Positions 790 through 63,808 of a DNA stretch of 64,000 bases are shown here, piece after piece. Each line of letters begins with the position of its first letter. Positions within the stretch are counted from its first letter, which is position 1. A program made the translations under genes and the position numbers. The notes under the pieces are model-generated. The model was not told the DNA's origin, made no database searches, and worked only from the letters and a program-made list of their open reading frames with translations. Where the stretch lies: contig NW_002060955.1 of NCBI RefSeq assembly GCF_000150275.1, forward strand, positions 536,886-600,885. Reading direction: 5' to 3'. The stretch is from Trichoplax adhaerens. Lineage: Eukaryota; Animalia; Placozoa.

Positions 790-1900
790 TTCAATTATTC
801 CTTGTGAAGTAACTTGAATCAAGGAGGATTTTCCCTTCTAATTTGCAATAACTGCCGTCATGGCCTACGTCAATACTGGCAGTGGTAGACATAAAAAAAA
901 AAAAAATCCTTTGCATTGCACCAATGGAATATCTGTATATACGATAGCAATGGAATTGTAGACGTCAAAATCTCTTCAACTCGGCACAACGATAAAACGT
1001 CGTCCTGAATTTAACCCATTTTAATTCCTCCTTATTGAAAGTGACTTTGATCAAAGGAGAATTTTCCCTTGCAATTGGCAATAGCTGCTGTTACGTTGCC
1101 AATATTGATATACTGTAATGGCAGAGGCAAACATGCACGAACTATTTCCAGTGAAATCGTGCCAGAAGGAAATCCTAACAAGATCAACAGTACGATACCC
1201 TTGGAGCTAATATCATAAAGCTCCAGTCACTTTAACCAGGCATTACTAACCAAAAAACAGTCGGTAATTGAACCAATTTAATTTCTCCTTATCAAAACTA
1301 ACTTTTGATCAACGGAGAATTTCCCTTGCAATTGGCAATAGCTGCCGTCATGTTGACCCATATTGATATTTTGAAAGTAGTAAACATGGAAAAAAATCAA
1401 TTCTCACTGAAATAGCAGCAAGAGAAAATCGATACAATACGTAGAGTAAGAATAAGACAATACCACTGCAACTGCAATAGAAAAAACTTGAGCCTTCAAT
1501 CATGGACCACAACAAAACGTAGTCCTTCATTGAATCCATTTATTTCATAAACCACTATTATCCAAAAAGTAACTATGATCAAAAGAGAATTTTCCTTGTC
1601 ATTAGCAATGACTGCCATCATGCTGGCCAATATCGACATTAGCCATAGCAGACATGAAAATTGAAACACCCAAGATTCCACTGCAGCTGTAATAAACCCT
1701 CAATCTTTTCAACTCTTATTCATTTCTATTTGCTCATTCAGTGCAATTTAGATTATAGGAAAAATCATCTGATCCCATTTTTCCTAGCAATGGCTACCAT
1801 CATTTTCGATTTTTTTAGCCCATGTTGATTGGCACTCGCACCTATTTCAATTCACCATTTCCAGTGGAAATAGCAAGAAAGGAGCGAGAGAGAAATTGCG
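790..1900. repeat. Degenerate tandem repeat, about 5 copies, period about 210-270 bp
   Basis: A core resembling 'ACTTTGATCAAAGGAGAATTTTCCCTTGCAATTGGCAATAGCTGCCGTCATGTTGNCCNATATTGAT' recurs near 810, 1043, 1301, 1572 and, more decayed, 1775. No ORF is shared between copies. Confidence 0.75.
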
Positions 1901-2990
1901 CCGCGATCAAACTGTATGATACCGTTGAAGCTGTAATCAAACCTGTAACGAAAGGGTGATGCAGACGAGGTGTCAATCATGACACAATACCGTCAAGAAA
2001 GGAGTCAACTAGAGTGATTGACGAGCGCATTCTGCTTTGACGAGTGTATACTACGCCACTTGCAAGTGTGGCACATTAGAGCACGTATTGTATGTTATCC
2101 ATTTGTGGTGTGTCCTCGGTATCGGTACAATACGGTTCGGGAACAGACCATTACGGTAATGGACCGTGGCTATTGTAGTAGGTTAGTTTCCATTGATTGT
2201 TTTGAAAAAGGACAATGACGTCAGAGGATGGTGATTCGCTGCTATTGGTTGAAAAATTGTGGTGGGGTTGATCCTTGGATTGGTTCCGTATCTGCGCAAT
2301 AGGCTTGTACGCAGATGTGGACGTGCTTTCTGAATCGCATAGAATGGCCATGGGGTTGTACGGATGTATGATACAGTTCGGTTCAGAAATTGCTATGAAA
2401 TGACAGCCAAGGTTGTCTTTTGTTGCAACGTGGGCAGGGTAGGGCCGTATCAAACGCACAAAAACAACAGCAATACTATACAATAGAAAGTATTGTAAAA
2501 AGTGGCTACTGTACTCTAGCCTTTCTTCTCTTTGTCTCCTTGGAAAATCCCATACTGATACACTACCGATACGATACTGTACTAGTATGACGTAAAAAGA
2601 AAACATCCTTGACCGCCTACGCTGTACTGTACTGGTGTGTTTGCCAATTTTACAGTCCAAAGTCTTGCAGCATACATTGTACTGTAAAGGATCTTTTTAA
2701 AGAGCACTCCTACAGCGCTAACACTTCATTTGCCAATCAGACGATCAACGGTGAAGAAGCAACCAACAAACCCGACGACTATCCAATCGCTTTGAAACGC
2801 AGTTTTGTACTGCAATCTTGACGCATCTTAACTACCAACATTATAGACAAGTTACAGAAAAGGCCTGAAAAAATTGCCTTGAAACCTTGCAAACTGATCT
2901 TTCAAGAGAGTAGATACGGTAGAAGCGGATTATCGCTTTTGGATGATTGAAGCACTTTGATTAGCCAGGATAGAGAATCGACCCAAGATA

Positions 2991-4606
2991 ATGAAAGGAA
3001 TTCTACAAGCAGCTTGTGTCTATAACGGTAAATACTATCTGCTCTATTGATGTTATAAAGTTGACCATGATAGACGATCAATTTAGGTAGAATAAGCTGC
3101 TAATAGGGATTGCTTCATACAAAGATTGAAACTGATTATTGATTTTGGGATAGATGATGACCTACTGCAACTATCAGAATATTTGAACGAGGTACTAAGG
3201 GCAATAGACGAGGTCGAAAGTAAGTAGTCAGACTCGGTACTTTGCTGTAGTTATCGATTAATATGGGCATCCACGATTTACATTTGTTATCTACTGGTTG
3301 TTTTAGGGAAAGATGCACAACAGCAAAACCGACTCATTGGTCCTTCTCCTTCGCGACCGTCTACCGATTTCATGGCGATCTATAGTCCACCAGTAATAAA
3401 TGACATACACTTGCATCAGTATGACGAGAATTCCTCCGAAAATAGCAGTAACGTATGGAATTACAGTGATCAAGACAGCGATTCTGATCACGGCTATGAT
3501 TCATACAACAGTAAGTTAATATTAAAAATGATAATACCGTATAGTATACAGTACAGTGTGTGCTGTTGATTTTATTATTGTTATTGTCGTCTTCATACCA
3601 GACCAATATAATAACCGTACAATATACTATTATTTTGATAAGGTTCAGAAAATGCTCGTTTATTTAGAAATGAATATGTCCATGAACTAATTTTCTACGT
3701 TAAATTAACAAATTAGACAATACTTTTGTAAGCTGATTTTATGATTCAAGTATTGAAATTGATAGCAGTGTTCTTGCACTGTCATTACAGATCTGAACGA
3801 TACCGTAACTGGTCAAAATCGTAGATACCCAGACAATGGCTTTCAATTTCACATGGATACTATGGAAAATACATCTTTCACGACTTCTGGTATGTTGCTT
3901 ACTACAAAATGTATGATAAGCTTAATAGCGTAGACACGATTCACTTCTACTCTTGATGACAATTTTCTATTGCTAAACGCCCAATTAGATTCATTCTTCA
4001 ATCCTTTGCCGCCAAATGACTTTAGCGAATATGACCCTTCAAGCGAGGGTCCTAGTTCGCCTGATAGTATTTATGGTGGTAATAATGAAATCAAGAAGCC
4101 TATAAAAGATAATCGTCGCCGTAAGAAGTTTAAAGGTAGTTAGTTAGCTAGTACTTTTGATGCTCATCTTTTATGGTGCCACCCTAAGCCTTTAATGCAG
4201 CTATGATATGAACAAGATTTAGTATAATTTTAAATTAATTATAGCAATCTTTCGTTGTACAGGTGAAGCGTCTCAACCGCTAACCTTATGGGAGTATATC
4301 CTGATGAATTTAATTGCACCAGAATCGAAGGAATTCGTCAAATGGAGTAATGAAGCTAATGGCGAATTTATCATCAAAGACTCTAAATTGCTTGCAGAAT
4401 CGTGGGGGATTCATAAATGCAAGCAGCCTACGACGTATGAAAACTTGTCCAGATCATTACGCTATTACTATGGAGAAAAGATCCTGGAAAAAGTACAACA
4501 TCGCCGTTTAATGTACAGATTTATCAAGCGTGAACAATTTAATAATTCTAAACAAAGATACTTAAATTTAAAAAGGAAGAGACCGATTTTGAGCAAAACG
4601 TTTTAG
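2991..4606 (+). CDS. ETS-domain transcription factor, Elf/E74-like (about 298 aa; exons 2991-3027, 3154-3219, 3307-3510, 3791-3889, 3989-4135, 4263-4606)
   Basis: All six exons join in frame through GT-AG phase-1 introns (897 nt total). The last exon encodes LWEYILMNL..VKWSNEANGEFIIKDSKLLAESWGIHK..YENLSRSLRYYYGEKILEKVQHRRLMYRF, an ETS domain with the three Trp and the RxLRYYY recognition helix. DSK..WGxHK and ILxKV..RLxYxF resemble the Elf/E74 subfamily. The start codon is the least certain part. Confidence 0.9.
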
Positions 4607-7738: not shown

Positions 7739-10700
7739 TTATACATATTCTGCTGGTGGCGATAATATTGGTTGTTGATTATCGGCTAGACTACGCTTGA
7801 CAGCGGGATAACTGGATACAGGTGCCGATGAAGCTGGTCCTTTAGTTAATGGTGAAGCCTGTGGTCTATACTTAAATTTTCGTTTTCCCTTTAATTCGCT
7901 ATCACTAATTCCTTTTTTAGTTGGAGCTATTGGATTTACTTTTTTCTCCATCTTGTGCCGATAGGGTGGTACTTTGCCACGTTGTAGTGTATTGTAAGAA
8001 TCAGATTCTCCTTGTTGTGAATTGATCTTGCGAAGGTGGAAACTTTTTTCATGGCGATCACTACGTTCGCCATCGCTATCGGTACTACTTGGTGGCTCGA
8101 GTAAATCATCTAGCGGATCATCGACTGGGCCTTCATCGCTTGTTGATGAGACAGCTTCTAATTCACCAATGATACTACCATCCGATTCTGGCATAGTCGA
8201 TAATCGATTAAATTGTTGATGTAATAAACCACTGGGATAGCCATAACGTAGACCTTTGTAAGGAGCGGGAACAGGGCCATTTTGGATACTCCCTTCTAAT
8301 TCACTTTCATACAGGCCATCGCCATCAATGCTAGTGAGATCGAGATCATAATGTTCTAATGGCTCAGTTAACTTTAATGGATGGTGTGGATGATGATTAT
8401 TATTAACTTGTGTCATTGGTGCTTGATGTGCAACATGAGCATTATTGTTCGGTATTATTCCACGACGATGAGGATTACGAACATCTTGCTTATTATTCAT
8501 GGGTGGATTTCGTGTAGTCATTTCAATTTCGACATTGTTTTGACGATGTGGAAATGTAGGATAATGTGCATGGTGTTGATCAAGAGTATTAGCATCCCGA
8601 TTATGATGATGCTTCGTAGACGATTCAACAGGTAGACTTTTAACACTACTTGGCTTCGATTTTCTACCGCCGCGACTTCGATTTAAAATATCATGTTGTA
8701 AACTATGACTACTGTTACTTTTATTCATACGCTCATTTTCACTTTCAGTAAAATTGCCATTTTCACTATCTTTAACTGGATCACTACATGAATCTTCCAA
8801 AAGATCGCCAATGTCTGTTCTTGAATTTTCAGTTGTTTGAGTTTTTTCACTATCGACAAATGCTTTATTAGCGATTCCACCATTATTACCATAATTATTA
8901 TTACTTTCATTGGTTTGATCAAGTGGATTATTATCATCATTTTCAGTTAACGAATGCGTTTGTTTTTTCGATTTTCGACGCCGACGGCGCCTTTCTTTCT
9001 TAACAACGATATAAATTAATATGGCAATCACTATGCTTGAAATAGCCGCAAAAACGATTGCTAATATTAAAGCAATCGGTACTGGCTGATTCTGAGGCCC
9101 TGGTTGGACGCAATCATAACCACCATCAGATCGGCCTTGACAAGTTGTACCTTGTAAGCATGGCGATGATAGGCAAACTAGCGCAGTTTCGCATACTTCA
9201 CCGGTAAAATTAGTTAAACAACTACATGTAAACATGGTAGTCGATGATTTTGATGGTATACATGTTGCGTTATTCTTACACGGACGAGATCGGCATGCAC
9301 CAAGATCAACACAAGTATAATTTTCCCAATTATCTTGGCAATAACTGCTATTACTGGGGCATGGTGATGATGCACAAACAGGGCTGCCATTGCAGCCTTG
9401 GCTAATGCCGTTACTCTGGCTAGATAGAACAAAAACTGTATTTTGGCTTGAATTTTGCGCTGTATTAAGTGGCAAGCTATAATCGTTGGCTTTTAAATTA
9501 TTTAAACAGCCAGAAAATGGTGTTATAACACCACCATCAAGAATTTGTCCACTTGGTCCATTGGCTAGTGTCAGTGATTTTAAATCAATACCTAAAAAAT
9601 TTAGAGTAGGCTGAGAAAATTGCTTGCTGTTCTTGATATTATCCACTAGCAACGAAATAGTTCCATTAGAGTATCTTATCACTTGGACAGTATGCCAGAG
9701 CCCATCATGAACAAATTTATTAACTTCAACATAACCTTGAGTTGTGGAATTGACAATTACAGAGTATCTTATTAAGCCAAGGTATACCTAATATAGAATG
9801 GAATCAAAAATCAAGATAAAATCAATGTAACTACCAACCTCTGTGAAAGAAACTAACTTTGAAACTTAATGTGGATACTAATCTTACCTGTAAGACAGTT
9901 GAATTTGTTTTACCCGTAGCGTAGAAAATAATCCCATTTAATCTACGTGTCCTAATACTGATTGAAATTTGACTTTTCTGAGTATTAATAGATAGGTCAC
10001 GCTTGCGTTGTCGTTGTCTAGCAATTGGGCTAACTAAATTTTGGATTGTTAGAGATCGATAATAGGCTGCACTCAGAGTATAGCTGATGAAAGCGTTATT
10101 TCCCAAAGTAATCCCTCTAGAAGCTACAGCAAGAGGTAATACAAAACGTTAATTAGACAAGAAATGAGCTGAATTACAAAGTGTGGTGTTTAAATGGATA
10201 ATAGGATAATTAAGTACAGACATTAACTATAAATAGCCCTAAAAAATTATTGTATATTGATTCTACGTATTAGAATAAAGTGCTAAATTAATAGGATTAG
10301 CATTTAAAAGAAAGATGGAGATCTTGAATAAAGTTTCTCTAAGCAATAATGAAATTGAGCGCATTGTACCTTGATTACAAAATGTTCCAGTTCTATTTTG
10401 GCTACATTGACAGCTTGCAGTAAACCAATTATCGATGCATCGGCTATTATCCATACAAGGATTTGGACTACAAACAGATCGACGTAAACATGTTGCTAGG
10501 ATTCCGGAAGATTGCGTTAAATTTTGACGCTTAATATCGGCGTGATTGATTTGAACGCTACGCATACATCCAATAAATGATGATGAATGTAAACGAGTAG
10601 GATATTGAGTTAAAATATTAACAGATTGAATGCCACCAAGATAACTTGAAGCAGATTGGAGATTAAACGCCCTAATAACGATCGATACAATCATAAAATC

Positions 10701-13700
10701 ATTATTTAAAATTGCTTAAATATCACTTAATATATTTGATCGCCCTATGGAATTATATGAGATGTGATCACGATTTTACATAGAGCTATGGCATGTACTT
10801 TTTCTACACAATAAATTTAAATTATCGACATATCTTGATATTAATGTTATTGACTGTTCCTATTATCATATCAGGAATAACTTATAAGAAAGATGCGAAT
10901 AATACTATTAATTAATACTGTATGGCAAAGTGGAGGATAAATTATGCAATAAAAAATATCTAATACAGTTTAAAATAACAGAAGACTTAAACTATCATTT
11001 ACTACCTTTAACTTACATGTTAGGAGTTTGAGCTTTACCATTGGTTGTAGAACATGTTGATGAAGTAGAACCATCGATACACTGATCAACTTTCAATTCT
11101 CCGTACTAATTATTAAGAATAAACGTTAGCAACTATTTAACGTGTAAAGTCAAGAAAAAATTTAACTCTACGTCATAGCTGCGATTTCAAATAGTAGGGA
11201 ATCATACAATCTAAGCTTTGCTTATATATCGCATTCCGACTGTGCTAGTTGATACCATTCTTTTTATTAACATTGCGACAAACTGAAATAATTTGTTGGC
11301 TAGTGATACATATACATAGGAAAATTATTAAAATTATAAGTTTATACCGTACCAAATAAATTAACTTAGACTACTCTAATTATTATTAATATTTCATCAA
11401 AATTATACGATTATTGGCTAGCATCAAAATGTAATCGGTAATAAGAAAGATCAACTATAAAGTAAAGTAAAAACAGCTATGCTACTGTAAATAGTAAAAT
11501 GGTATTAAAATTATACGATTTATTAGCTGGCATAAAAAATTATGTTTAAAAATTCTAATCATTAAATAAAACAGCTACTTCTACCGTAACTATTACTCTA
11601 AATTGGTACACCAATCTTAGTTTTGTAAAGGAAAGAGATTTCGATCGTGATGCAATACTTGGTAAAAATTTTAAACTATAAAAAATAGCATCTACAGAGC
11701 GGTTTCTAAACCATTTTGACTTACCAAACCTATTCTGTGAGCTCTAATTCGATGCCAAAGACCATCATTAACAACCGTATTTGCTGTAAGCTTGGCTGTA
11801 TTACCGTTTTCAAGAGAAAATGCAAATTGAACTTTACCTTGGATAATTTGGATAACTAAATAGTCGCTATTTTGCACTGAATACGTATACAGCAGTAACC
11901 CATTGCTTTGCAAGGTAGAAAATGAAATAGAAATAGTAGTAGTTGCAGGCTGTTGGCTAATCATGCTAGTTGGTAGCATGCCATAAGAAAGTGATTGAAA
12001 TCCCATGCTATGATGTTGACATCGATCACCATGAGTTCCAAATGTACATTGGCATCGAAACCAATCACCAAGAAGGAAACAAGTCCCGCCATTATAGCAA
12101 GGATTAGGAGAGCAACTACTAAATTGAGATGCTACGTTAACGTGAAGTACGGCTGAAGTCGATTTTGCAAGAGGACCAATTCCATCTTGAGCAATAACAA
12201 CAAGTTGATATTGTTGAATGATGGTAAAATTAAACCGCACAACATAAGTAATTTGGCCAGTAGTTGAATCAATACTGAAATGATTGGATATAGCATTACT
12301 AACTAATTTATAGCTTAGAATACTATTTGGTGCTCGATCTGCATCAGTTGCTTTGACAGTAACAACCGATGATCCTGTTGGTGTAGTCGAGGTAAGAGTA
12401 ATAGTATAAGAGGATGGATCAAAAATTGGTTTGTTATCGTTGATATCTGTTACAACAACGTAAACGATGATTGTCGTATTTAAAACAGGGCTTCCACTAT
12501 CCATGGCTAATATAGTTAGATTATAGTGGGAGGTTTTTTCACGATCTAACTCTTTCGCGATGGAAATGTGGCCATTTTGATCAATCTTAAAAACGCCTTG
12601 GGAATTACTTTGTGATGCTATGCGATATCGAATTTGACTATCTGGACCAGTATCATTATCCTGAGCAGAAACTGACGTTAAGACAGTAGTTACAGTAGCA
12701 TTCTCAGCAATATAGATAGGTGTTTTTGGATAAGTTATAAACTGAGGTTGATAATGATTGACTCGGATAATATGAATAGTCAAATTTAGCTTGGATGATG
12801 GCGTAATAGGCCAATTGATATTAGCATCTTCAGCTAATATTGTAATCCAATAAGTATTGGTAGTAATAGGCCTCGTAGTTAACGATTTAGCCAAGGTAAC
12901 ATTGCCATCGCTGGTAATTGTAAATCGGCCTTGAGCATCATTTAACAACTGATAGATAGTTTTAGCATTAGAGCCTGTATCGTGATCGAGAGCTCGAGCG
13001 CTATAAACTATATTACCCACTTGAATTTGTTCGTTAATGTTGATGCTAGCATGAGATGATGTAAATTTAGGGCCATGATCATTAATATCATCCACGATAA
13101 TTATAGCCTGAGTTTGGTTGGTTTGGCTTAGCTGTTGTTGATGAGCAACAGTAATAACAAGTGTATAACTAGGCCATTTTTCGCGATCTAATAATCGATG
13201 AACAGTGATAATTCCAGTTGTTGAATTGATTTGAAAGGATGAATTAATATTACCAGCAGCAATTTGATATGTTAATGTTGCATTAATATCGGCTGTACTT
13301 CCTTGAATTTGGCCTACAACAGTGCCAATAGTTGCATTTTCAATTACTCGATAATTGTACTGATTGTGTTGAAAGTAAACTGGACTATCGCTAACATCTA
13401 AGATAGTTACAAGGACAGTTGCAGGTGTTGTTGATTTTAATCCTAAACCATCCATAGCGTCAATTATGAGCGTATAACTTGTACTTCCTTGGCTATCTTC
13501 TCGATCTAATACTTTACCAGTCATAACAGCACCCGATGTTGTATTAATTTTGAAACGATTTTGATAATTATTTCTAATTTGGTATCGAATTTGACTATGA
13601 ATAGTGTTATTTGCATCTTGATCGTAAGCATAAACTCTAGTTAAATAAGTATCACTAGGTTGATTTTCTTCAATCTTGGTTGAATAATGTTGTGGTTGAA

Positions 13701-15732
13701 AAATTGGCCGATGATCATTGCTATCGGTTACTGTAATAATAACTTGCGTTGTCGATGTAATTGTCGGTTGATTATTTCTATTTTCAGCATAAACTGCTAA
13801 GGTATAGCTTGCGATGGATTCACGATCGATCGTTGATTTCAAAGTTAATACTCCAGTTAGTGTATCAAGTTGAAATGGAACAGCTGATTCAACCAGATGA
13901 TAGTATAGAGGTAGATTTTGACTTCCTTGCGATAGCGTTGCATAGACAGTTAAGATATAGGTCGATGGCTGGCTTGATTCATTAACTTGTCCTTGATATT
14001 GGGTAGCATTAAATACTGGTAATGGAATAGTAGAAGGATCGACAACAGAAATAGTGACTTGAGAGGTAGCTGAATATCGCTCCGATGTTGCATTTTCAGT
14101 CGCATCGATTGTTAATTTTCGCACTTGGCCAATTTGCAAAGGGACATTGGATGATTTATTCATTAAGATATTACCCTGCTGATCGATTTGAAAAGCAAAA
14201 TCGTTATTGCCAGTTAAGATCTGATATTGTAATTGACTATTGCTACCAGTATCATTATCGTAAGCTAACGTTCGTAGGACAAATACTCCACCACGACTAT
14301 TTTGAGGTAGAAGAGCAGAATATTCAGAACGTTGAAAATGGGGTTGATGATCATTATCATCAGTGACTTGGATGGTTAATATCCCACTAGACATAATATT
14401 GGGATGTTTACTATCTGTAGCGTTAATGGTTAATTGATACTGGCTGATATTTTCCCGATCTAATGGTTTAACGTTAATCACCAAGGCAGGATTTTCTCGA
14501 GCATCTAATTGGAAAACCTGGCCAATATTACCAGCAGTAATATTGACATGGACAGGTCCTTCTACATCTGCTTGGTTATAAATAGTTGTCACAAAGGCAA
14601 CTAAGGCTCTATCCACACTATTCTCAGGGACATAAGCAATCGATCCTGATGGAAAAGGTTGAATATTTAATGTAATAGCATTGGGATTAATGACTTTAAT
14701 GCTGACGATCGTTTGTTGAGTATTGCTCGGTTGGCCATGATCGCTAGCAGTCACGGCGATAGTATACGATGTTTGTGTTGGCTGGCGTCGAAGAGTAATG
14801 GCACCTGTGGTAGCATTGATGTTAAAATCATTTTGTACTGTCTTAAAGGCATAACTAACTAGACCAAATTGGCCATCATCACTATCTTCAGCATGAACAG
14901 TTACGATTAAAGTGCCAATCGATGCTGTAGAGAGAATATCTCCTTGATAGGAAGCTTGTTGAAATTTTGGTGCATTATCGTTAATATCTAAAACATAAAC
15001 ATCTAATCGTGTATAACCGACATATTGATTTTTTTGGCTATCGGTTGCTGAAATGTTGATTGCATAATACGATTGTTGTTCTCGATCGAATTTCTTAATC
15101 AGTTGGAGATATAAAACATCACCTTTGGTAATTAAGTTAAAGTGGCCAGTTTCATTGCCAGAGACGATATGATAGAGGATAGCACCATGATCTGGATCAG
15201 CATCGCTAGCTTGGCCAATATGATAATCGGCACCGACATTGGCACTTTCTGAGATATTGACGATATAGCGAGAAGATGGAAATCGTGGAGGATTATCGTT
15301 GACATCGAGGACACGGATGTTAATATCGAATATTTGATCTGCACCACTTGAACCGCTACAATATCGAGCAATTTTCAAGGTGATGCTCGAGGTGGCTATA
15401 TTTTCTCGATCAATACTACGATTGGTAATTAAGCAGCCATTGCTGGTGTCGCTAAATCGGAAATAACTAGCATAACTGCTACTTTGTTGGTTAATGGCAT
15501 AATTGCAATTAGTTCGAGCATCGCCAATGCAGCCAATGGCTTGATTTTGAGCACTTCCATCGGTAACATTAAATGAAGTAACGACTTGGGCTAAACTGCT
15601 GTGATGATGCCCACAACTGGTTAAAAGGATGAATAAATAAAAGAGTTTTATGACCAATGGAATAGTTTGACTATGGATTGGACGATAGCCACCGGATTGT
15701 GGTAAGAAAGGAATTGATATTTTTATTGCCAT
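7739..15732 (-). CDS. Fat/Fat4-type cadherin (about 2227 aa): signal peptide, about 11 cadherin repeats, EGF-LamG-EGF-LamG-EGFx3, TM, about 420-aa cytoplasmic tail. Exons 15732-11725, 11105-11017, 10671-10370, 10123-9888, 9787-7739
   Basis: DRE, DxNDN and AxDxD cadherin motifs in the 1346-aa ORF; two LamG domains (DGLWH twice); EGF cysteine patterns; TM IALILAIVFAAISSIVIAILIYIVV followed by KKERRRRR. Exons join in frame through GT-AG introns (6684 nt). Tail contains EHYDLD and ends AEYV, recalling Fat/Fat4 tail motifs. Confidence 0.92.
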
Positions 15733-39610: not shown

Positions 39611-40109
39611 GCTGTAACGAAGTTATTTACGAAATTATTAATATGATAGCAAATTTATGCTTAACACTGTATTTTACTTATTCAATACTAATGTTATGCT
39701 AATGAGTAAGCTTCTATTTATTATTATAATAATAGCGATGACGCAGCTTATTGATATTGAAAAATAAATAAATAAAGAGAAGTAAGGTATGGAAAGAATG
39801 TCTTCGCGCTTTCAATCTATTACGGCTTCGTTAATATCAAAAAAGCAATTTACCAATAATTAGAATTGACGACCGTTGACTTCTTAGGGCGTATCCAATT
39901 TGGCCGATTTGAGCGCACAGTGAACTAACATAGATTTTGAAATCTTGACATTAAATAGAAGGCATTAGTTTGGCCCAATCATATAATGTAAAGACGAGTG
40001 CGATAATCAATCGCATCTCTATTAAAGTTGCAACCTCTATCGATTAGAGTACTAGTGTTTATTTCCCCAAATTACTGTGTATGCTTTCAGTCTTGTTATA
40101 AATTGAAAC

Positions 40110-43100
40110 ATGGCGGCATATGAGTCCACAAAATTGACTATCCTCGATGAAACCGAATTTATCCACAAAAAAGGTATGAAATGCTTTGAAGAAGGCGATT
40201 ATGAACAAGCTCTATTACATTACAAAGAAGCTGTTACTCAAATCCAATCTACGTCCAAGAATAGTAATAATAATCATCACCATCAACTTGAACACGATAT
40301 TTATCTGGACATAGCCGATTATTATTTAAATCAATATAAACTGATAGAAGCTGATAAATGGAGAGGAAATGCGGAGATATTAGCCGAACAACTACAAGAT
40401 AGAGTAAGAATTGCAAAGTGCTTTGATAGACAAGGGTGCATTAAAGAATTGCAAGGTGATTTGAATGGAGCTTTAAAAGATTTTAACAAATCACTTGGAA
40501 TAAAATCAGAATGGTCAGAAAATGAAGATATCAATATGAGTAAGTCTTATCTTAACATTGGAAGTATTTATGATAAGCAAGGCAAGTATGACGACGCTCT
40601 ATCGATGTATAACAAGTCACTGAAGATTCAACTAACACAACTTGATGACAATCATCCAAAAATTGCTGTAACTTATAGCAATATTGGTGGTGTCTATAAT
40701 GATCAAGGCAAGTATGACGACGCTCTATCGATGTATAACAAGTCACTGAAGATTCAACTAACACAACTTGGTGACAATCATCCAAGTATTGCTACGACTT
40801 ATCACAACATTGGTGGTGTCTATTATCATCAAGGCAAGTATGACGACGCTCTATCGATGTATAACAAGTCACTGAAGATTCAACTAACACAACTTGATGA
40901 CAATCATCCAAGTATTGCTACGACTTATCACAACATTGGTGGTGTCTATAATGATCAAGGCAAGTATGACGATGCTCTATCAATGTTAAACAAGTCACTG
41001 AAGATTCAACTAACACAACTTGGTGACAATCATCCAAGTATTGCTACGACTTATCACAACATTGGTGATGTCTATAGAGATCAAGGCAAGTATGACGACG
41101 CTCTATCGATGTATAACAAGTCACTGAAGATTCAACTAACACAACTTGGTGACAATCATCCAAGTATTGCTTCGACTTATCACAGTATTGGTAGTGTCTA
41201 TAATCGTCAAGGCAAGTATGACGACGCTCTATCGATGTATAACAAATCACTGAAGATTCAACTAACACAACTTGGTGACAATCATCCAAGTATTGCTGCG
41301 ACTTATCACAACATTGGTGGTGTCTATAATCATCAAGGCAAGTATGACGACGCTCTATCGATGTATAACAAATCACTGAAGATTCAACTAACACAACTTG
41401 GTGACAATCATCCAAGTATTGCTACGACTTATCACAACATTGGTGGTGTCTATAATCGTCAAGGCAAGTGTGACGACGCTCTATCGATGTATAACAAATC
41501 ACTGAAGATTCAACTAACACAACTTGGTGACAATCATCCAAGTATTGCTGCGACTTATCACAACATTGGTGGTGTCTATAGAGATCAAGGCAAGTATGAC
41601 GACGCTCTATCGATGTATAACAAATCACTGAAGATTCGACTAACACAACTTGGTGACAATCATCCAAGTATTGCTGCGACTTATCACAACATTGGTGGTG
41701 TCTATAATGATCAAGGCAAGTATGACGACGCTCTATCGATGTATAACAAATCACTGAAGATTAAACTAACACAACTTGGTGACAATCATCCAAGTATTGC
41801 TACGACTTATCACAACATTGGTGGTGTCTATAATCGTCAAGGCAAGTGTGACGACGCTCTATCGATGTATAACAAATCACTGAAGATTAAACTAACACAA
41901 CTTGGTGACAATCATCCAAGTATTGCTGCGACTTATCACAACATTGGTGGTGTCTATAGACATCAAGGCAAGTATGACGACGCTCTATCGATGTATAACA
42001 AATCGCTGAAGATTCAACCAACACAACTTGGTGACAATCATCTAAGTATTGCTGCGACATATCACAACATTGGTAGTGTCTATATACATCAAGGCAAGTA
42101 TGACGACGCTCTATCGATGTATAACAAATCACTGAAGATTCAACTAACACAATTTGGTGACAATCATCTAAGTATTGCTGTAACTTATAGCAATATTGGG
42201 CAAGTCTATAATCATCAAGGTAAGTATGACGACGCTCTATCGATGTATAACAAATCGCTGAAGATTGAACTAACACAACTTGGTGACAATCATCCAAGTA
42301 TTGCTACGACATATATCAACATTGGTAGTGTCTATAAAGATCAAGGCAAGTATGACGACGCTCTATCGATGTATAACAAATCACTGAAGATTCTACTAAC
42401 ACAACTTGGTGACAATCATCCAAGTATTGCTTTAACTTATAACAATATTGGGCAAGTCTATAGAGATCAAGGCAAGTACGACGACGCTCTATCGATGTAT
42501 AACAAATCACTGAAGATTCGACTAACACAACTTGATGACAATCATCCAAGTATTGCTATAACTTATAGCAATGTTGGGCAAGTCTATAACGATCAAGGCA
42601 AGTATGACGACGCTCTATCGATGTATAACAAATCACTGAAGATTAAACTAACTCAACTTGGTCACAATCATCCAAGTATTGCTGCGACATATCACAGTAT
42701 TGGTGATGTCTATAAAGATCAAGGCAAGTATGATGATGCTCTATCGATGTATAACAAATCACTGAAGATTAAACTAACACAACTTAATGACAATCATCCA
42801 AGTATTGCTACGACATATCACAACATTGGTGTTGTCTATAAAGATCAAGGCGAGTATGACGACGCTCTATCGATGTGTAACAAATCACTGAAGATTCAAC
42901 TAACACAACTTGGTCACAATCATCCAGGTATTGCTGCGACATATAACAGCATTGGTAGTATCTATAAAGATCAAGGCAAGTATGACGACGCTCTATCGAT
43001 GTATAACAAATCACTGAAGATTAAACTAACACAACTTGGTCACAATCATCCAAGTATTGCTACGACTTATCACAACATTGGTAATGTCTATAAAGATCAA

Positions 43101-43940
43101 GGCAATTATGACGACGCTCTATCGATGTATAACAAATCACTGAAGATTCAACTAACACAACTTGGTGACAATCATCCAAGTATTGCTACGACTTATAACA
43201 GCATTGGTAGTGTCTATAAAGATCAAGGCAAGTATGACGACGCTCTATCGATGTATAACAAATCGCTGAAGATTAAACTAACACAACTTGGTCACAATCA
43301 TCCAGGTATTGCTACGACATATCACAACATTGGTGTTGTCTATGAAGATCAAGGCAATTATGACGACGCTCTACCGATGTATAACAAATCGCTGAAGATT
43401 CAACTAACACAACTTGCTCACAATCATCCAAGTATTGCTACGACATATAACAGCATTGGTAGTGTCTATAATGATCAAGGCAAGTATGACGACGCTCTAT
43501 CGATGTATAACAAGTCACTGAAGATTAAACTAACACAACTTGGTCACAATCATCCAAGTATTGCTACGACTTATCACAACATTGGTGGTGTCTATAATCA
43601 TCAAGGCAATTATGACGACGCTCTATCGATGTATAACAAATCGCTGAAGATTCAACTAACACAACTTGGTCACAATCATCCAAGTATTGCTACGACATAT
43701 CTCAGTATTGGTAGTGTCTATAAAGATCAAGGCAAGTATGACGACGCTCTATCAATGTTAAACAAGTCACTGCAAATCTTTTTAGTAACGCTAGGTGAGA
43801 ACCATCTTCATACTGCCCAGCTGTATCGAAGTCAAGCTGTAGTCTATTGTAAACTGTTGAATTTTCGTCAAGCAATCTCATTATATCGAAAGTCCATTAA
43901 CAGTCTACGCAATGTCTACGGAGAGAGTCATCCTCAAATT
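40110..43940 (+). CDS. Long TPR-repeat protein (42-aa kinesin-light-chain/NPHP3-type TPRs), 3' end runs into the assembly gap
   Basis: Uninterrupted ORF from AAACATGGCGGC. About 3 divergent N-terminal TPRs, 26 near-identical 42-aa repeats (HPSIATTYHNIGGVYNDQGKYDDALSMYNKSLKIQLTQLGDN), then a divergent capping repeat. Confidence 0.95.
40540..43800 (+). repeat. Coding tandem array: 26 x 126 bp
   Basis: The CAAGG anchor (QG codons) falls at 40578+126n, checked at 41460, 41838, 42846 and 43728. No indels between units. Confidence 0.97.
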
Positions 43941-44258
43941 NNNNNNNNNNNNNNNNNNNNNNNNNNNNNNNNNNNNNNNNNNNNNNNNNNNNNNNNNNNN
44001 NNNNNNNNNNNNNNNNNNNNNNNNNNNNNNNNNNNNNNNNNNNNNNNNNNNNNNNNNNNNNNNNNNNNNNNNNNNNNNNNNNNNNNNNNNNNNNNNNNNN
44101 NNNNNNNNNNNNNNNNNNNNNNNNNNNNNNNNNNNNNNNNNNNNNNNNNNNNNNNNNNNNNNNNNNNNNNNNNNNNNNNNNNNNNNNNNNNNNNNNNNNN
44201 NNNNNNNNNNNNNNNNNNNNNNNNNNNNNNNNNNNNNNNNNNNNNNNNNNNNNNNNNN
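43941..44258. other. Assembly gap (318 N)
   Basis: Run of N. Confidence 1.
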
Positions 44259-46417
44259 ATATTCTAAAAGGCGGGCTGATAAGTTACTAATTGTAGTGCG
44301 AAGTATAAACTGTAATCGTATCGAGGTGTAACCTCGTGTAGCTATAAATACCGATCAACTAATAATAAAATGCAGTTATCAATCTTACTCACGGAGTGAA
44401 CTTATTATTAAAGAACAAAACAGTCTATATACAGCATTGAATCAGTTGACTAATTGGATAATATTGCACACTGACTTACTGGCTCAAGTTCGCAAATGTA
44501 TCCGAATTCAATAAACGATCATTCCGTGTAAACAATGATATTCAAACATTAGAAAAAGTATAGTCTGTTCAAGTAGACTAGTCGGTAAAGCTAATACTAT
44601 ATTGCTAAATTGAAGGGGCAAGTAGATAATACAATTAAGCGGCGATCGAATTTAATTACTGTTTTTTACTTTAGAAAAAAAGTTTTGAAGTAACTTTGTC
44701 CAAATACGACATCATCTTGAATCAATTTATTCATACTAGAGCTAAAACATTTAGCCAATGTCTCAACCATAAAGGGATCCAATAATTCAAACTCATTAAA
44801 ATACTACTTTTATGTTGTTTTATCACCGGTTTAATGAATGCAACATAAACAATTCACGCGTGCAATTACATTACTCAAAACGAGTATAACGCTTAGGTTG
44901 ACAACAGAACTATGTTTTCTTTCACTTAACTTAAATTGTATATGATGTATTCACGGTAATTCTTGATCATGCTTTTGATTGATCTACTTTGCAATTTTAT
45001 ATACGTCATAAAGGTTCCAGGTAACAAGTCTATGACTTTTTATATCACCTATATCCAAGCCTTAATAACTCTAAAATTGCAAATTAAAAATAGTCAATCG
45101 CGATTAGTAGACAGAGGTGTATCCAAACATGTTCGTCTAGTCGAAAGGCTATCCATTCGTCCTATCCTTCATAGTTTTAAAATTGAATCTTTAGTTATTC
45201 TTCAATAACTAGACATAACCATTACTAATTAGCTATAAGGTTGCAATAGCTTATTCTATCAACTATAAATCGAACACCCATAAGTTGATAGAGCATTATC
45301 GTCAATATTCAGTCATTAGCAGATAATCATATAGGGGGAAATGAATTATTAAAAGGTCAACGTTTAGTCAGTATAACAAAACAAATTTCATTCAAGTAAT
45401 ACGAATACAGAAGTAGAATAAAATCGTACAATAAATATTCACACAGAATCAAATCGTATTCTTGCATCTGCAACTACGACAATTCATGCTTCTAAAACTC
45501 ATCAATCAAGGCAAGAATAGCATGTACAGTATCATCAAGGGAAATACCTTTTTTAACATTTTCTATTCTAGATTTGTTCAATATCATTATTAGATGGATG
45601 ATATCAATACTTCAAATTCTGGTCATCGTACATCATCACTGACAAAGACAATAACATATAAATATAGAATTTTATTTGTTTTCAGCTTGATAACACCTAA
45701 TATTCAAACAGAATGAGCTTTGAAGTAGCATTACATGACGAAAACTTTGCCAGCCACCAAGATAATAGATCATTTTTAATTGAAGTCCTCATTTGTAAGG
45801 AAACCTTATTATTTCTTTTCATTGAGAAACATCAATCATTCTTACCAATATAAGATCTGACAGCTGAAAGTTACTAGAATTAAATACGACTACCGAACAT
45901 GCAATATTTACGGTAGGTACTAGTGAACCACGTACAAAATATAGATCGAGTAGTGGTTATGTTAGTATTTTGCTGTAGATGAAAACAAATTGATATCCAG
46001 TTTATACATTATAATAATAATTGGATTTCGTAAAGCATCAGTGAAAATATGTGCATGACCAACACGTACTTCTTTATTCTCTCTATCCATCTACTCCCCT
46101 TAAAAGAATATGATCATTACATGCATCATTAGAAAGTACGAATAGTTCAATGTTATGGCTTACGATATTAATTACAAGCTAACCAAACAACCTGTACGCG
46201 ATTCATTAGATTCTACTTGTGCACTCCGGCTACTTTTACATACACGATACATATACAGTTCAAGTTTGTTTTATTTTATATTTCGCATTCGATCAATATG
46301 GCAAAGTCGAGCATTTACAAGCTATCATTTAATATCGGTTATAAGTTTCGTTTAAGAGTATATCTTGTTTCATTGTTTGCATTTTAATTTATCTGCGATA
46401 TTAATGTAATGTTATAG

Positions 46418-46674
46418 ATCCAAAGAAGCACTTTTTCCAAACTGCAAATACAATTGGTTTGGATTGGACAAGATTGGCTGCAACTTTGGATCAATCCATC
46501 GATGTCGATAGTATTAAAGATAAAGAAAGTAAGGTTTTTGACCAAGCGATGAAATTTCTCAACAAGTGGTATAATAAAAATTATCCAAATGTAAATGTTG
46601 ATCAGCTTCAAGCAGCTTTACGACGAATAGATAGGAACGATATTGCTTTGGCTATTAAGCCCACTAAGACATGA
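46418..46674 (+). CDS. Terminal exon encoding a death domain; probably the C-terminus of the TPR gene
   Basis: Acceptor TTATAG at 46412-46417, then PKKHFFQTANTIGLDWTRLAATLDQSIDVDSIKDKESKVFDQAMKFLNKWYNKNYPNVNVDQLQAALRRIDRNDIA. This fits the death-domain pattern G.DW..LA..L / Q...L..W / L..AL..I.R.DI. It has no ATG of its own near the start. Linkage to the TPR exon crosses the gap and is inferred. Confidence 0.8.
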
Positions 46675-48012
46675 AAATATTGTTGCGTAATGGCATATTT
46701 TTCAGTGTAATGCTTGTCTTTCGAATAGTAAGTACGATATTATAGATTGAGAAATTGATTATAACTATTAATCCTATTAAGAACGGAACTGTATTCGTAC
46801 ATGTGGTTGATATTGCGCTTTATTTAACAACTACTTGAAATCGATTAAATTCTATTTCTTTATAAATGAAGTAAAAAACTTAAGCAAATTTAATACTCTT
46901 TACACTTTGTATTAAGGCTATCATCAGTCATAAAGTAATTTTCAGCTAATTTGTATATCAATTATCGAGTGTAGTGTGCAGTTGTACAGCCTCTATGAGA
47001 TGAAAGAGGAAAGCAAACTAGACTTGATTTGTTAAATACAATCAAAAATTTACTAGTATTAATTTTACTATTGTCTTTTCTTTTTGTATACTTATTTGGA
47101 GTCTGGTTGTATCTATTTACACTTGTATTCGTTCTGTATTCTTATTCGACTGCTTTGGCTTAAATAGCGTGTAGTAAGCTAATTCTAAGGCTCCAACATA
47201 AAATCAGACTATCAAGATTTATATAACCATGTTCAATTTTATTACAAGGAAAAACAAACTGTAGCTGTATCTGCAACAAACTAGCAACAAGAACCCCTCG
47301 ATGCATATGCTAATAAACCTAGCACATGTCCTATTAAGTAATTACAGTGAAAATCCGATTCCTTTAATGATGTTGCCACATGAAAATGTTGTAGCAACCT
47401 ACAGCGCACTCTAAGCCTGAATCTAGACTGTACTCTAAGCATGATTTGATATCGACAGTGCCAGCGTGGCGAGTGGATTCTAAACCATTTGAGTTCACAA
47501 TCACTAACTCAAAATTTAAGTTATTAAAATGGAGCAAATCTCTAACTTGATACAATTAGGCAGATACCGTCTTTAGCGTTAACGTATCGTTAGTGCTACT
47601 GCTCGTTGCGTTACTACTGTATTCGTATAGCTGAAATCTCTGCAACCAGAGCAACTTCTGTTTCAATCATTCAGTATCAGATTATTCACATATTAGTCAA
47701 TAAAATCATTTTATAACGGCCAAATCAATTTCTTCGCTCAATATAGTGAATACAATATATTTCAACTATATGTTTGCCAAACTGATACAAATAATTGACC
47801 ATCATCTAGCAGGAGTAACCGTAACTAACTGCTCTATACTAGTAACATTATTACTTATTCGATCTACAAATCATGAATTACATATGCTTGACTGGAAATA
47901 CTACTAGCTTAGTCATCTAACATAGGCACATAGAGGTAAAGCAGTAACCATGTACTTATTAACATCCACCACTTGCTTTCATTATTATTGCATATGCTCG
48001 CATATACAATAA

Positions 48013-58329: not shown

Positions 58330-63808
<5,479 letters not shown>

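Follow-up and report, generated by a model that had tools for sequence, protein, structure and literature searches.

A long TPR array joined to a death domain in Trichoplax adhaerens: a candidate variable-groove sensor or adaptor lacking a Roc-COR module

Repeat arrays that are highly conserved internally while diversifying at the residues of a ligand-binding groove are documented in fungal NOD-like receptors (NLRs) (PMC4986451) and in brown-algal receptors (PMC3341825, PMC11378527); in the literature searched, none has been described for placozoans or other animals. Trichoplax ROCO genes with tetratricopeptide repeat (TPR), Death, and CARD domains have been listed (Civiero et al., 2014; PMC4104024), and published accounts of these genes give domain architectures only, without mention of array hypervariability. 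A survey of placozoan immunity screened for NACHT/NB-ARC, TIR, LRR, and similar classical domains (PMC6321704), a set by which a TPR-(Roc-COR)-Death family would be missed. Here we describe a gene of this kind on the forward strand of a 64,000-nucleotide stretch of the Trichoplax adhaerens genome (NCBI RefSeq assembly GCF_000150275.1, contig NW_002060955.1, positions 536,886 to 600,885; hereafter the window, in whose coordinates positions are given unless a paralog is named). The gene at this locus, 40110–46674, is intact and transcribed; in three exons and about 1436 codons, it encodes a long TPR array followed by a terminal death domain. As judged by its sequence, the gene is a Roc-less, long-array member of an expanded placozoan TPR-(Roc-COR)-Death family, and that family and its domain architectures are already known and annotated (PMC4104024; gene models of Trichoplax sp. 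H2). A first-pass annotation of the window had proposed a recognition receptor at this locus, with a death domain and hypervariable TPR units, and its individual claims are taken up below with the evidence that bears on them.

Structure and transcription of the gene

The first exon opens at the ATG at 40110 and remains open for 3831 nt, with no stop or frameshift, up to an assembly gap that begins at 43941; the reading frame arrives at the gap edge, 43940, on a complete codon. An in-frame TGA stands 6 nt before the start, which excludes an upstream coding exon in this frame. Further upstream, similarity of 91–94% to three paralogs (loci L002, L003, and L004) starts at 39625, 485 bp ahead of the ATG, and the forward-strand segment 39625–40109 appears to have been copied along with the gene and likely contains its promoter and 5′ untranslated region (UTR). 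The start codon and a family-specific N-terminal region of about 144 amino acids occupy 40110–40538. This region gives only weak Pfam matches (TPR_1, TPR_2, TPR_12) and is helical, at low confidence, in an AlphaFold 2 (AF2) model, consistent with degenerate TPR-like helices.

The rest of the exon is repetitive. Tandem Repeats Finder reports one tandem array at 40578–43772 (period 126 bp, 25.4 copies, 92% matches, 0% indels), which in the register starting at 40539 resolves into 26 units of 42 amino acids (40539–43814) and a degenerate 27th unit (43815–43940) that caps the array; the cap is conserved in L002, L003, L005–L009, L021, and L022. The array scores 1400.7 bits against Pfam TPR_12 (cut-off 30.1), in 22 stretches, and 732 bits against TPR_10. 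Repeat finding, Pfam, AF2, and Foldseek agree on TPRs of the 42-residue kinesin light chain (KLC) type, and the 26 indel-free units counted at first pass are thus confirmed.

The last exon, at 46418–46674, has a phase-1 acceptor after the AG at 46416–46417 and ends in a TGA stop at 46672–46674. It matches Pfam Death (PF00531) over profile positions 4–83 of 86, scoring 51.8 bits where the cut-off is 22.6 (E 9e-14), so that the death-domain terminal exon predicted earlier on this strand is borne out; in a PDB search its closest solved relatives are the death domains of ankyrin-3 (E 1e-6) and FADD (E 1e-4). The 3′ UTR follows at 46675–46950.

What lies between the two exons is interrupted by the gap (43941–44258), across which two related copies can be read. 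The unplaced contig C1003 (locus L001, 4170 bp) matches the window at 98.6% over 43500–43940 and at 100% over 44259–44514, with 441 bp between the two matches (C1003 positions 3473–3913). No stop occurs in this stretch ahead of a phase-1 GT donor, and its parts are, in order, a 157-nt tail of exon 1 encoding a 52-residue linker, a 78-nt intron, a 66-nt mini-exon of phase 1-1 with a GTAAGT donor, and about 140 nt of intron 2. The paralog L002 is ungapped, is 95% identical in the flanks, and has the identical exon/intron layout. The content of the window's gap is inferred from the agreement of these two independent copies, and the prediction is accordingly one of an exon-1 tail, short intron, mini-exon, and intron start of these same sizes, free of a stop ahead of the donor. 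The remainder of intron 2 (44259–46417) is 95% colinear with the intron of L002. The three exon lengths, 3988, 66, and 254 nt, add up to an in-frame 4308 nt, or 1436 codons; this figure is the sum of exons searched one by one, with the gap part taken from C1003 and L002.

The two guide copies are of different kinds. L002 (C1402:504500-513500, minus strand) is an inverted paralog about 65 kb upstream, with the same three-exon layout, only about 16 TPR units, and a unit order that is not colinear with that of the window. C1003 is a small scaffold with an internal gap; its 5′ half is about 90% identical to the window, as to any copy compared, its 3′ half is 97.7–100% identical to the window, and its array, which matches the window's 3′ half at 97.7%, is four units (504 bp) shorter. 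It is probably one of two things: the gene's other allele, possibly differing in repeat number, or a copy of very recent origin, possibly the clade's fifth member. The divergent 5′ half and the four missing units rule out C1003 as a simple fill for the gap, and it was used, beside L002, as a near-identical guide.

Transcript evidence comes from contigs of four public runs placed on the 3′ part of the paralogous gene (L002:2300–5700). Three runs of RNA type (one is recorded as RNA-Seq) show the joints 5187->5266 (78 bp skipped) and 2836->5122 (2285 bp skipped), both with GT..AG ends on the gene strand; a DNA-like run shows neither. L002 position 2836 corresponds to 46418 in the window, the very acceptor predicted at first pass, and the proposed splicing of the death exon to the TPR exon is borne out by these joints, although it runs through a 66-nt mini-exon that the gap had hidden. 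Where RNA contigs span the death exon and 3′ UTR, many of their variant letters match the window's own bases, including, in contigs covering the region homologous to L002 2300–2582, those at 46739, 46757, 46898, 46905, 46907, and 46917 of the 3′ UTR; the window copy is therefore transcribed too.

A nucleotide-binding module was looked for specifically. Whole-genome profile searches found no NACHT or NB-ARC match on the window's contig (C1402, 1.9 Mb), and 43 NB-ARC and 9 NACHT matches elsewhere in the genome. With no upstream coding exon in frame and all three exons accounted for, the earlier remark that neither domain is visible in this gene holds. Searches by tblastn with two paralogous Roc-COR open reading frames (ORFs) gave no match or remnant in the window, in intron 2, or in L002, and the nearest Roc-COR match on the same contig is more than 1.1 Mb from the gene.

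Groove variation and its evolution

The 26 units combine a nearly invariant scaffold with a small set of highly variable positions, much as the first-pass annotation had described. Y4, G8, Y11, G15, and A20 are present in all 26 units, I7 in 25, Y17 in 24, and Y24 in 23. Hypervariability in the per-codon table falls on unit positions 2, 5, 6, 9, 12, 13, and 31, where every residue listed earlier is found and the edge units add one further residue state at each position; positions 36, 37, and 41 are likewise variable. Units 17–26 (42555–43814) show a two-unit, 252-bp periodicity, in which one unit type, with H5/N6 and Q31/D37, takes turns with another, with N5/S6 and K31/H37, a pattern that suggests recent duplication of unit pairs.

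These positions were placed in three dimensions from model helix boundaries and published TPR geometry. In an AF2 model of the N-terminus with seven units, the predicted local distance difference test score (pLDDT) exceeds 90 over the units, each of which forms two helices, helix A from position 39 of the preceding unit to position 12 and helix B from 16 to 34. Positions 41, 2, 5/6, 9, and 12/13 are spaced three or four residues apart and so form one stripe along helix A, opposite the packing residues 4, 7, 8, and 11. Across TPRs, positions 2, 5, 9, 12, 13, 33, and 34 vary the most and are found on the concave side, and in HOP the ligand is contacted by positions 2, 5, 6, 9, 12, and 13 (Magliery and Regan; PMC1261162). 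Foldseek matched the model to KLC1/2 TPRs with a root-mean-square deviation of 2.3–3.6 A and a TMt of 0.8–0.87; the best natural sequence match in the PDB was likewise kinesin light chain (E 1e-41), and a Podospora 42-residue TPR protein (4Y6C/4Y6W) was also matched. Model and geometry together support the earlier assignment of the hypervariable helix-A sites to the concave groove.

A further suggestion, that each repeat carries a residue code loosely like those of TALE or PPR proteins, is not supported. Groove signatures, read at positions 2, 5, 6, 9, 12, and 13, take 24 distinct forms among 25 core units, and only five of them recur in any other array examined; with nearly every signature distinct and almost none common to paralogs, no small alphabet is in use.

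The pattern of substitution was analyzed in several ways. Minimum codon-state changes per site, a count that is insensitive to recombination, total 29.5 (non-synonymous) and 2.5 (synonymous) over the 26 units at positions 2, 5, 6, 9, 12, and 13, an omega (dN/dS, the ratio of non-synonymous to synonymous divergence) of about 2.5. Measured against the array-wide synonymous rate, groove omega by state counts is 2.4 for the 26 units (p 0.001) and 3.7 for the 25 core units (p 1e-5), versus 0.39 for the 33 codons outside the variable set (26 units), where values range from about 0.4 to 0.6. In our site-model fits to the window's units, M2a was preferred over M1a (likelihood ratio test, LRT, 32.8, p 8e-8), with an omega of 5.8 on about 11% of sites and posteriors above 0.99 at sites 2, 9, 12, and 31. 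The same comparison in other arrays gave LRTs of 12.3 (L002), 25.0 (L025, contig C1028), 9.8 (L026, C1383), and 9.5 (L007, C1410), and the same sites were picked (2, 5, 9, 12, 13, and 31). Nei-Gojobori pairwise estimates for scaffold codons are 0.094 for dS and 0.034 for dN (omega 0.36), which indicates a protein under purifying selection; groove dN is 0.47, four times the array-wide dS in the window, and the same quantity is four to six times dS in four young arrays. In all arrays examined, it is common for groove codons 2, 5, 9, and 12 to diverge at two or three of their nucleotides with identical codons on either side.

The scaffold, for its part, appears to be homogenized. Median identity between units is 91% at the nucleotide and 83% at the amino acid level, adjacent units average 86%, and median pairwise identity is 96% for scaffold codons compared with 74% for variable codons. 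By the internal-conservation measure of Dyrka et al. (>85% across 100 or more amino acids), the amino acid sequence is at the threshold and the scaffold codons, at 96%, are clearly above it. When the window's array is compared with that of L002, the similarity of units is the same between the arrays as inside either one, and three groups of arrays (window/L002/L003/L004, L025/L026, and L007–L009) are each internally homogenized. Comparison of the units thus points to an array that evolves through unit duplication, unequal exchange, and gene conversion, with the scaffold held at about 96% identity, while the outward-facing helix-A residues (positions 2, 5, 6, 9, 12, and 13, with 31 and 41 in addition) change faster than synonymous sites. 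Overall, the evidence for diversifying selection at the groove sites seems good, but it is not conclusive.

The placozoan family and a proposed role

The first-pass annotation had called the death-domain exon an orphan, but the gene is no isolated design: genome-wide searches of the Trichoplax assembly (105.6 Mb in 1414 contigs, AT-rich) place it in a large family of ROCO type. The N-terminal region has 121 matches, many starting at query residues 1–7, and the Death profile gives 110. Several paralogous TPR exons, including those of L021–L023, are followed by an ORF of 737–762 amino acids with Pfam Roc and COR-A domains, and the 76 Roc-COR matches in the genome are interleaved with TPR and Death exon positions. 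Among 32 TPR-to-Death loci, defined by a Death exon at most 15 kb downstream on the same strand, Roc-COR intervenes in 15 and is absent in 17. The 21 TPR ORFs that are followed by Roc-COR are all of 848 amino acids or fewer, and none of the 35 TPR ORFs of at least 850 amino acids is followed by one. The Roc-COR exon has a phase-1 acceptor and the internal Death exon of one paralog is phase 1-1, which points to a family assembled from phase-1 cassettes. Relative to its paralogs, the window gene has 46–95% identity in the N-terminus, a conserved cap and linker, and 56–86% identity in the Death exon; the latter is most similar (68–70% of amino acids) to Death exons that follow Roc-COR in genes of contig C1389, more so than to those of other Roc-less genes. 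Gene models of Trichoplax sp. H2 include both a TPR-Death form (RDD37135.1) and a TPR-RocCOR-Death form (RDD45494.1), under automatic names such as 'Nephrocystin-3'. A search for orthologues with the N-terminal region at two query lengths gave one 37% JGI match and then nothing, and the best match in an all-representatives search was 39% identical.

Several paralogs have features of their own. At L021 (C1389:264000-273999, minus strand), a Death exon (4088–4324) stands between the TPR exon and the Roc-COR ORF (1353–3563), and a second Death exon follows (214–465); the first runs without a stop to a phase-1 donor, and the gene order may be TPR-Death-Roc-COR-Death. In their Roc-COR ORFs, L021 and L022 share 99% identity. 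L007–L009 (C1410:8187000-8226400) are three tandem long-array genes, with ORFs of 1081–1675 amino acids and a common cap and linker, in which groove signatures recur every three to four units; downstream of them only fragmentary or split Death-like matches are found, and their Death exons may be decaying. In L023, L024, and L026 (C1414:12748000, C1333, and C1383), a sub-family, a long E/K/Q-rich tail with repeated EEKQEKQ-like motifs replaces the window-type linker at the end of the TPR exon.

We favor, with modest confidence, a reading of this Roc-less TPR-Death gene as a sensor or adaptor with a variable groove. Its proposed functional steps draw on domain knowledge and on the fungal precedent (PMC4986451). 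A long cytosolic TPR superhelix would present a variable concave surface around a conserved ladder of Asn-6 residues, and the groove could bind extended, peptide-like ligands. Clustering or unmasking driven by the ligand would then free the C-terminal death domain to assemble with other death-domain proteins, for which the genome offers at least 110 Death exons, including those of Roc-COR-Death paralogs, as candidates, and the assembly might start a death- or inflammatory-type signal. The gene would thus be a sensor or adaptor arm, plausibly of an immune kind, and the part in non-self or allorecognition put forward at first pass would be one candidate use. Since it lacks a nucleotide switch itself, it may work by way of ROCO-Death paralogs. 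A broader scheme, which we consider doubtful and put forward only tentatively, is that placozoans use germline-diversified recognition, with long self-homogenizing TPR arrays as receptors, some in cis with Roc-COR and others carrying a death domain only and working in trans with ROCO-Death paralogs. If true, this would be an animal counterpart of the fungal NLR repeats with high internal conservation and of plant sensor/helper pairs, built on a GTPase instead of a STAND ATPase.

Several observations weigh against the sensor or adaptor reading or the evidence under it. The searches turned up no orthologue from another strain, Trichoplax sp. H2 included. At the gene level, the gap sequence is taken from C1003 and L002 and is not read from the locus itself, and the splice joints were observed on a 95% paralog, with joined contigs that cannot be assigned to one of the two copies. 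Position 31 lies near the end of an extended helix B and cannot be assigned on or off the groove. As for selection, dS is raised at the groove codons too (0.33 compared with 0.09), and within-groove omega is only about 1–1.4 in the window and L002, while it reaches 2.4–4.4 in L025 and L026; the strong signal thus depends on array-wide dS as the reference. The first-pass annotation had asked for dN/dS above 1 limited to the groove sites; the site models in five arrays and the state counts show such an excess, which is much smaller when local dS is used within the groove of the window and L002. The raised groove dS is compatible with old variants kept by selection while conversion homogenizes the rest, and locally raised mutation input is a possible source of the groove divergence. 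The site models, moreover, were our own fit on a fixed FastTree topology with a single branch-length scale and recombining units, which inflates the LRTs.

The same difficulties can be turned into an explanation that we regard as unlikely, though it deserves to be taken seriously: an ordinary scaffold or adaptor with a recently amplified array, whose groove pattern reflects low constraint on TPR surfaces and older alleles surviving at those codons amid conversion, with neither recognition nor diversifying selection. Positions 2, 5, 9, 12, and 13 are indeed the most variable, and the variable positions the least constrained, in TPRs generally (PMC1261162), and relaxed constraint accounts for part of the pattern. 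Once the raised local dS is applied, within-groove omega in the window and L002 falls to about 1, and the within-groove ratio of 29.5:2.5, set against an expectation of about 4.8:1, is marginal alone; the best solved relatives of the Death exon, moreover, are ankyrin death domains, which come from structural adaptor proteins. However, low constraint fits poorly with a groove dN several times the array-wide dS in the young arrays, with recovery of the same sites in five arrays from different contigs, or with codons two or three nucleotides apart beside identical neighbors. A scaffold omega of 0.36 indicates purifying selection, and the massive, clustered expansion of the family is usual for fast-evolving recognition families.

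Rather improbable, in our judgment, is that the protein has no signaling capacity of its own and acts in trans on Roc-COR-Death paralogs, either as a detachable sensor arm or as a decoy or inhibitor that joins or caps their death-domain assemblies. It would then be likened to sensor/helper pairs or to death-domain-only regulators. The closeness of the Death exon to those that follow Roc-COR in the C1389 genes, beyond its closeness to other Roc-less genes, favors such a role, as do an N-terminus, cap, and linker in common with ROCO genes and the fact that long arrays never occur with Roc-COR (0/35); this similarity of sequence, on which the idea is based, may instead reflect recent exchange of exons within the family. 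We find it very improbable that misassembly, with paralogs collapsed or joined in a chimera, produced the array or its connection to the death exon, or that the gene is a decaying pseudogene. The gap does sit at the critical junction, and the mixed relationship of C1003 to the window, near identity in the 3′ half with four units fewer and about 90% in the 5′ half, betrays poor assembly and an uncertain copy number. However, a 3831-nt frame stays open through 27 units and the 25 core units are all distinct; the gap flanks are colinear with both C1003 and the ungapped L002, the exon phases fit exactly, and RNA contigs carry the window's variants along with the expected splice joints.

The variable-groove reading gains its interest from the setting of the pattern, which occurs in one of the earliest-branching animals and is coupled here to a death domain, with Roc-COR in place of NACHT/NB-ARC in sister genes. 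If the arrays are receptors, intracellular surveillance in placozoans would rest largely on ROCO and death-domain modules, and the Roc-less members would offer a simple system in which to ask how a repeat sensor triggers assembly of the death fold without a nucleotide switch. The family is also a natural source of very long TPR scaffolds with 42-residue units, in which the variable positions are defined.

Elsewhere in the window, large exons of a FAT/CELSR-like protocadherin occupy 7739–15732 on the minus strand; one ORF, of 1346 amino acids, holds 10 cadherin domains and the start of a laminin-G domain, and another, of 647 amino acids, combines EGF repeats with a transmembrane stretch and a long cytoplasmic tail. 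An exon at 4304–4606 (plus strand) encodes an Ets DNA-binding domain (Pfam Ets, E 4e-24), and a proline-rich ORF with repeated motifs at 61355–61777 (minus strand) appears to resemble a formin FH1 region.

Comparison with known systems

The nearest relatives are the Trichoplax ROCO-TPR-Death/CARD genes (PMC4104024; RDD45494.1, RDD43187.1), which have the same N-terminus, the same 42-residue TPR type, cap, and linker, and the same phase-1 boundaries, together with a related Death exon. The window gene differs from them in lacking Roc-COR and in its array, which is three to five times longer and far more homogeneous.

Outside placozoans, the fungal NLRs (Dyrka et al., 2014; PMC4986451; Podospora 4Y6C/4Y6W) come closest in the repeats themselves, with KLC-like TPRs of 42 residues at very high internal identity, variation and positive selection on the concave face, reshuffling of units, and concerted evolution. 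However, they carry NACHT or NB-ARC and N-terminal HET, HeLo, or sesB effectors, whereas the window gene has no nucleotide-binding oligomerization domain and ends in an animal death domain at the C-terminus. KLC1 and KLC2 show the same 42-residue period, with a conserved Asn at position 6, and KLC binds cargo peptides in its concave groove; they differ in having six diverged repeats and a heptad region for the kinesin heavy chain, and they have neither a death domain nor hypervariability.

DAPK1 and ankyrin-type proteins resemble the window gene in joining a repeat solenoid to a C-terminal death domain, and DAPK1 is itself an animal ROCO protein with a death domain. Their repeats are of the ANK type, however, and they carry kinase/Roc-COR or ZU5-UPA modules and are single-copy and conserved. 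The LRR-ROCO and NB-ARC-TPR candidate receptors of brown algae (PMC3341825, PMC11378527) are, like the family described here, expanded and clustered, with diversification of their repeats at concave sites and shuffling of exons. In brown algae each repeat is a separate exon that is shuffled or alternatively spliced, whereas the window array is one exon, with exchange of units inside it and no NTPase.

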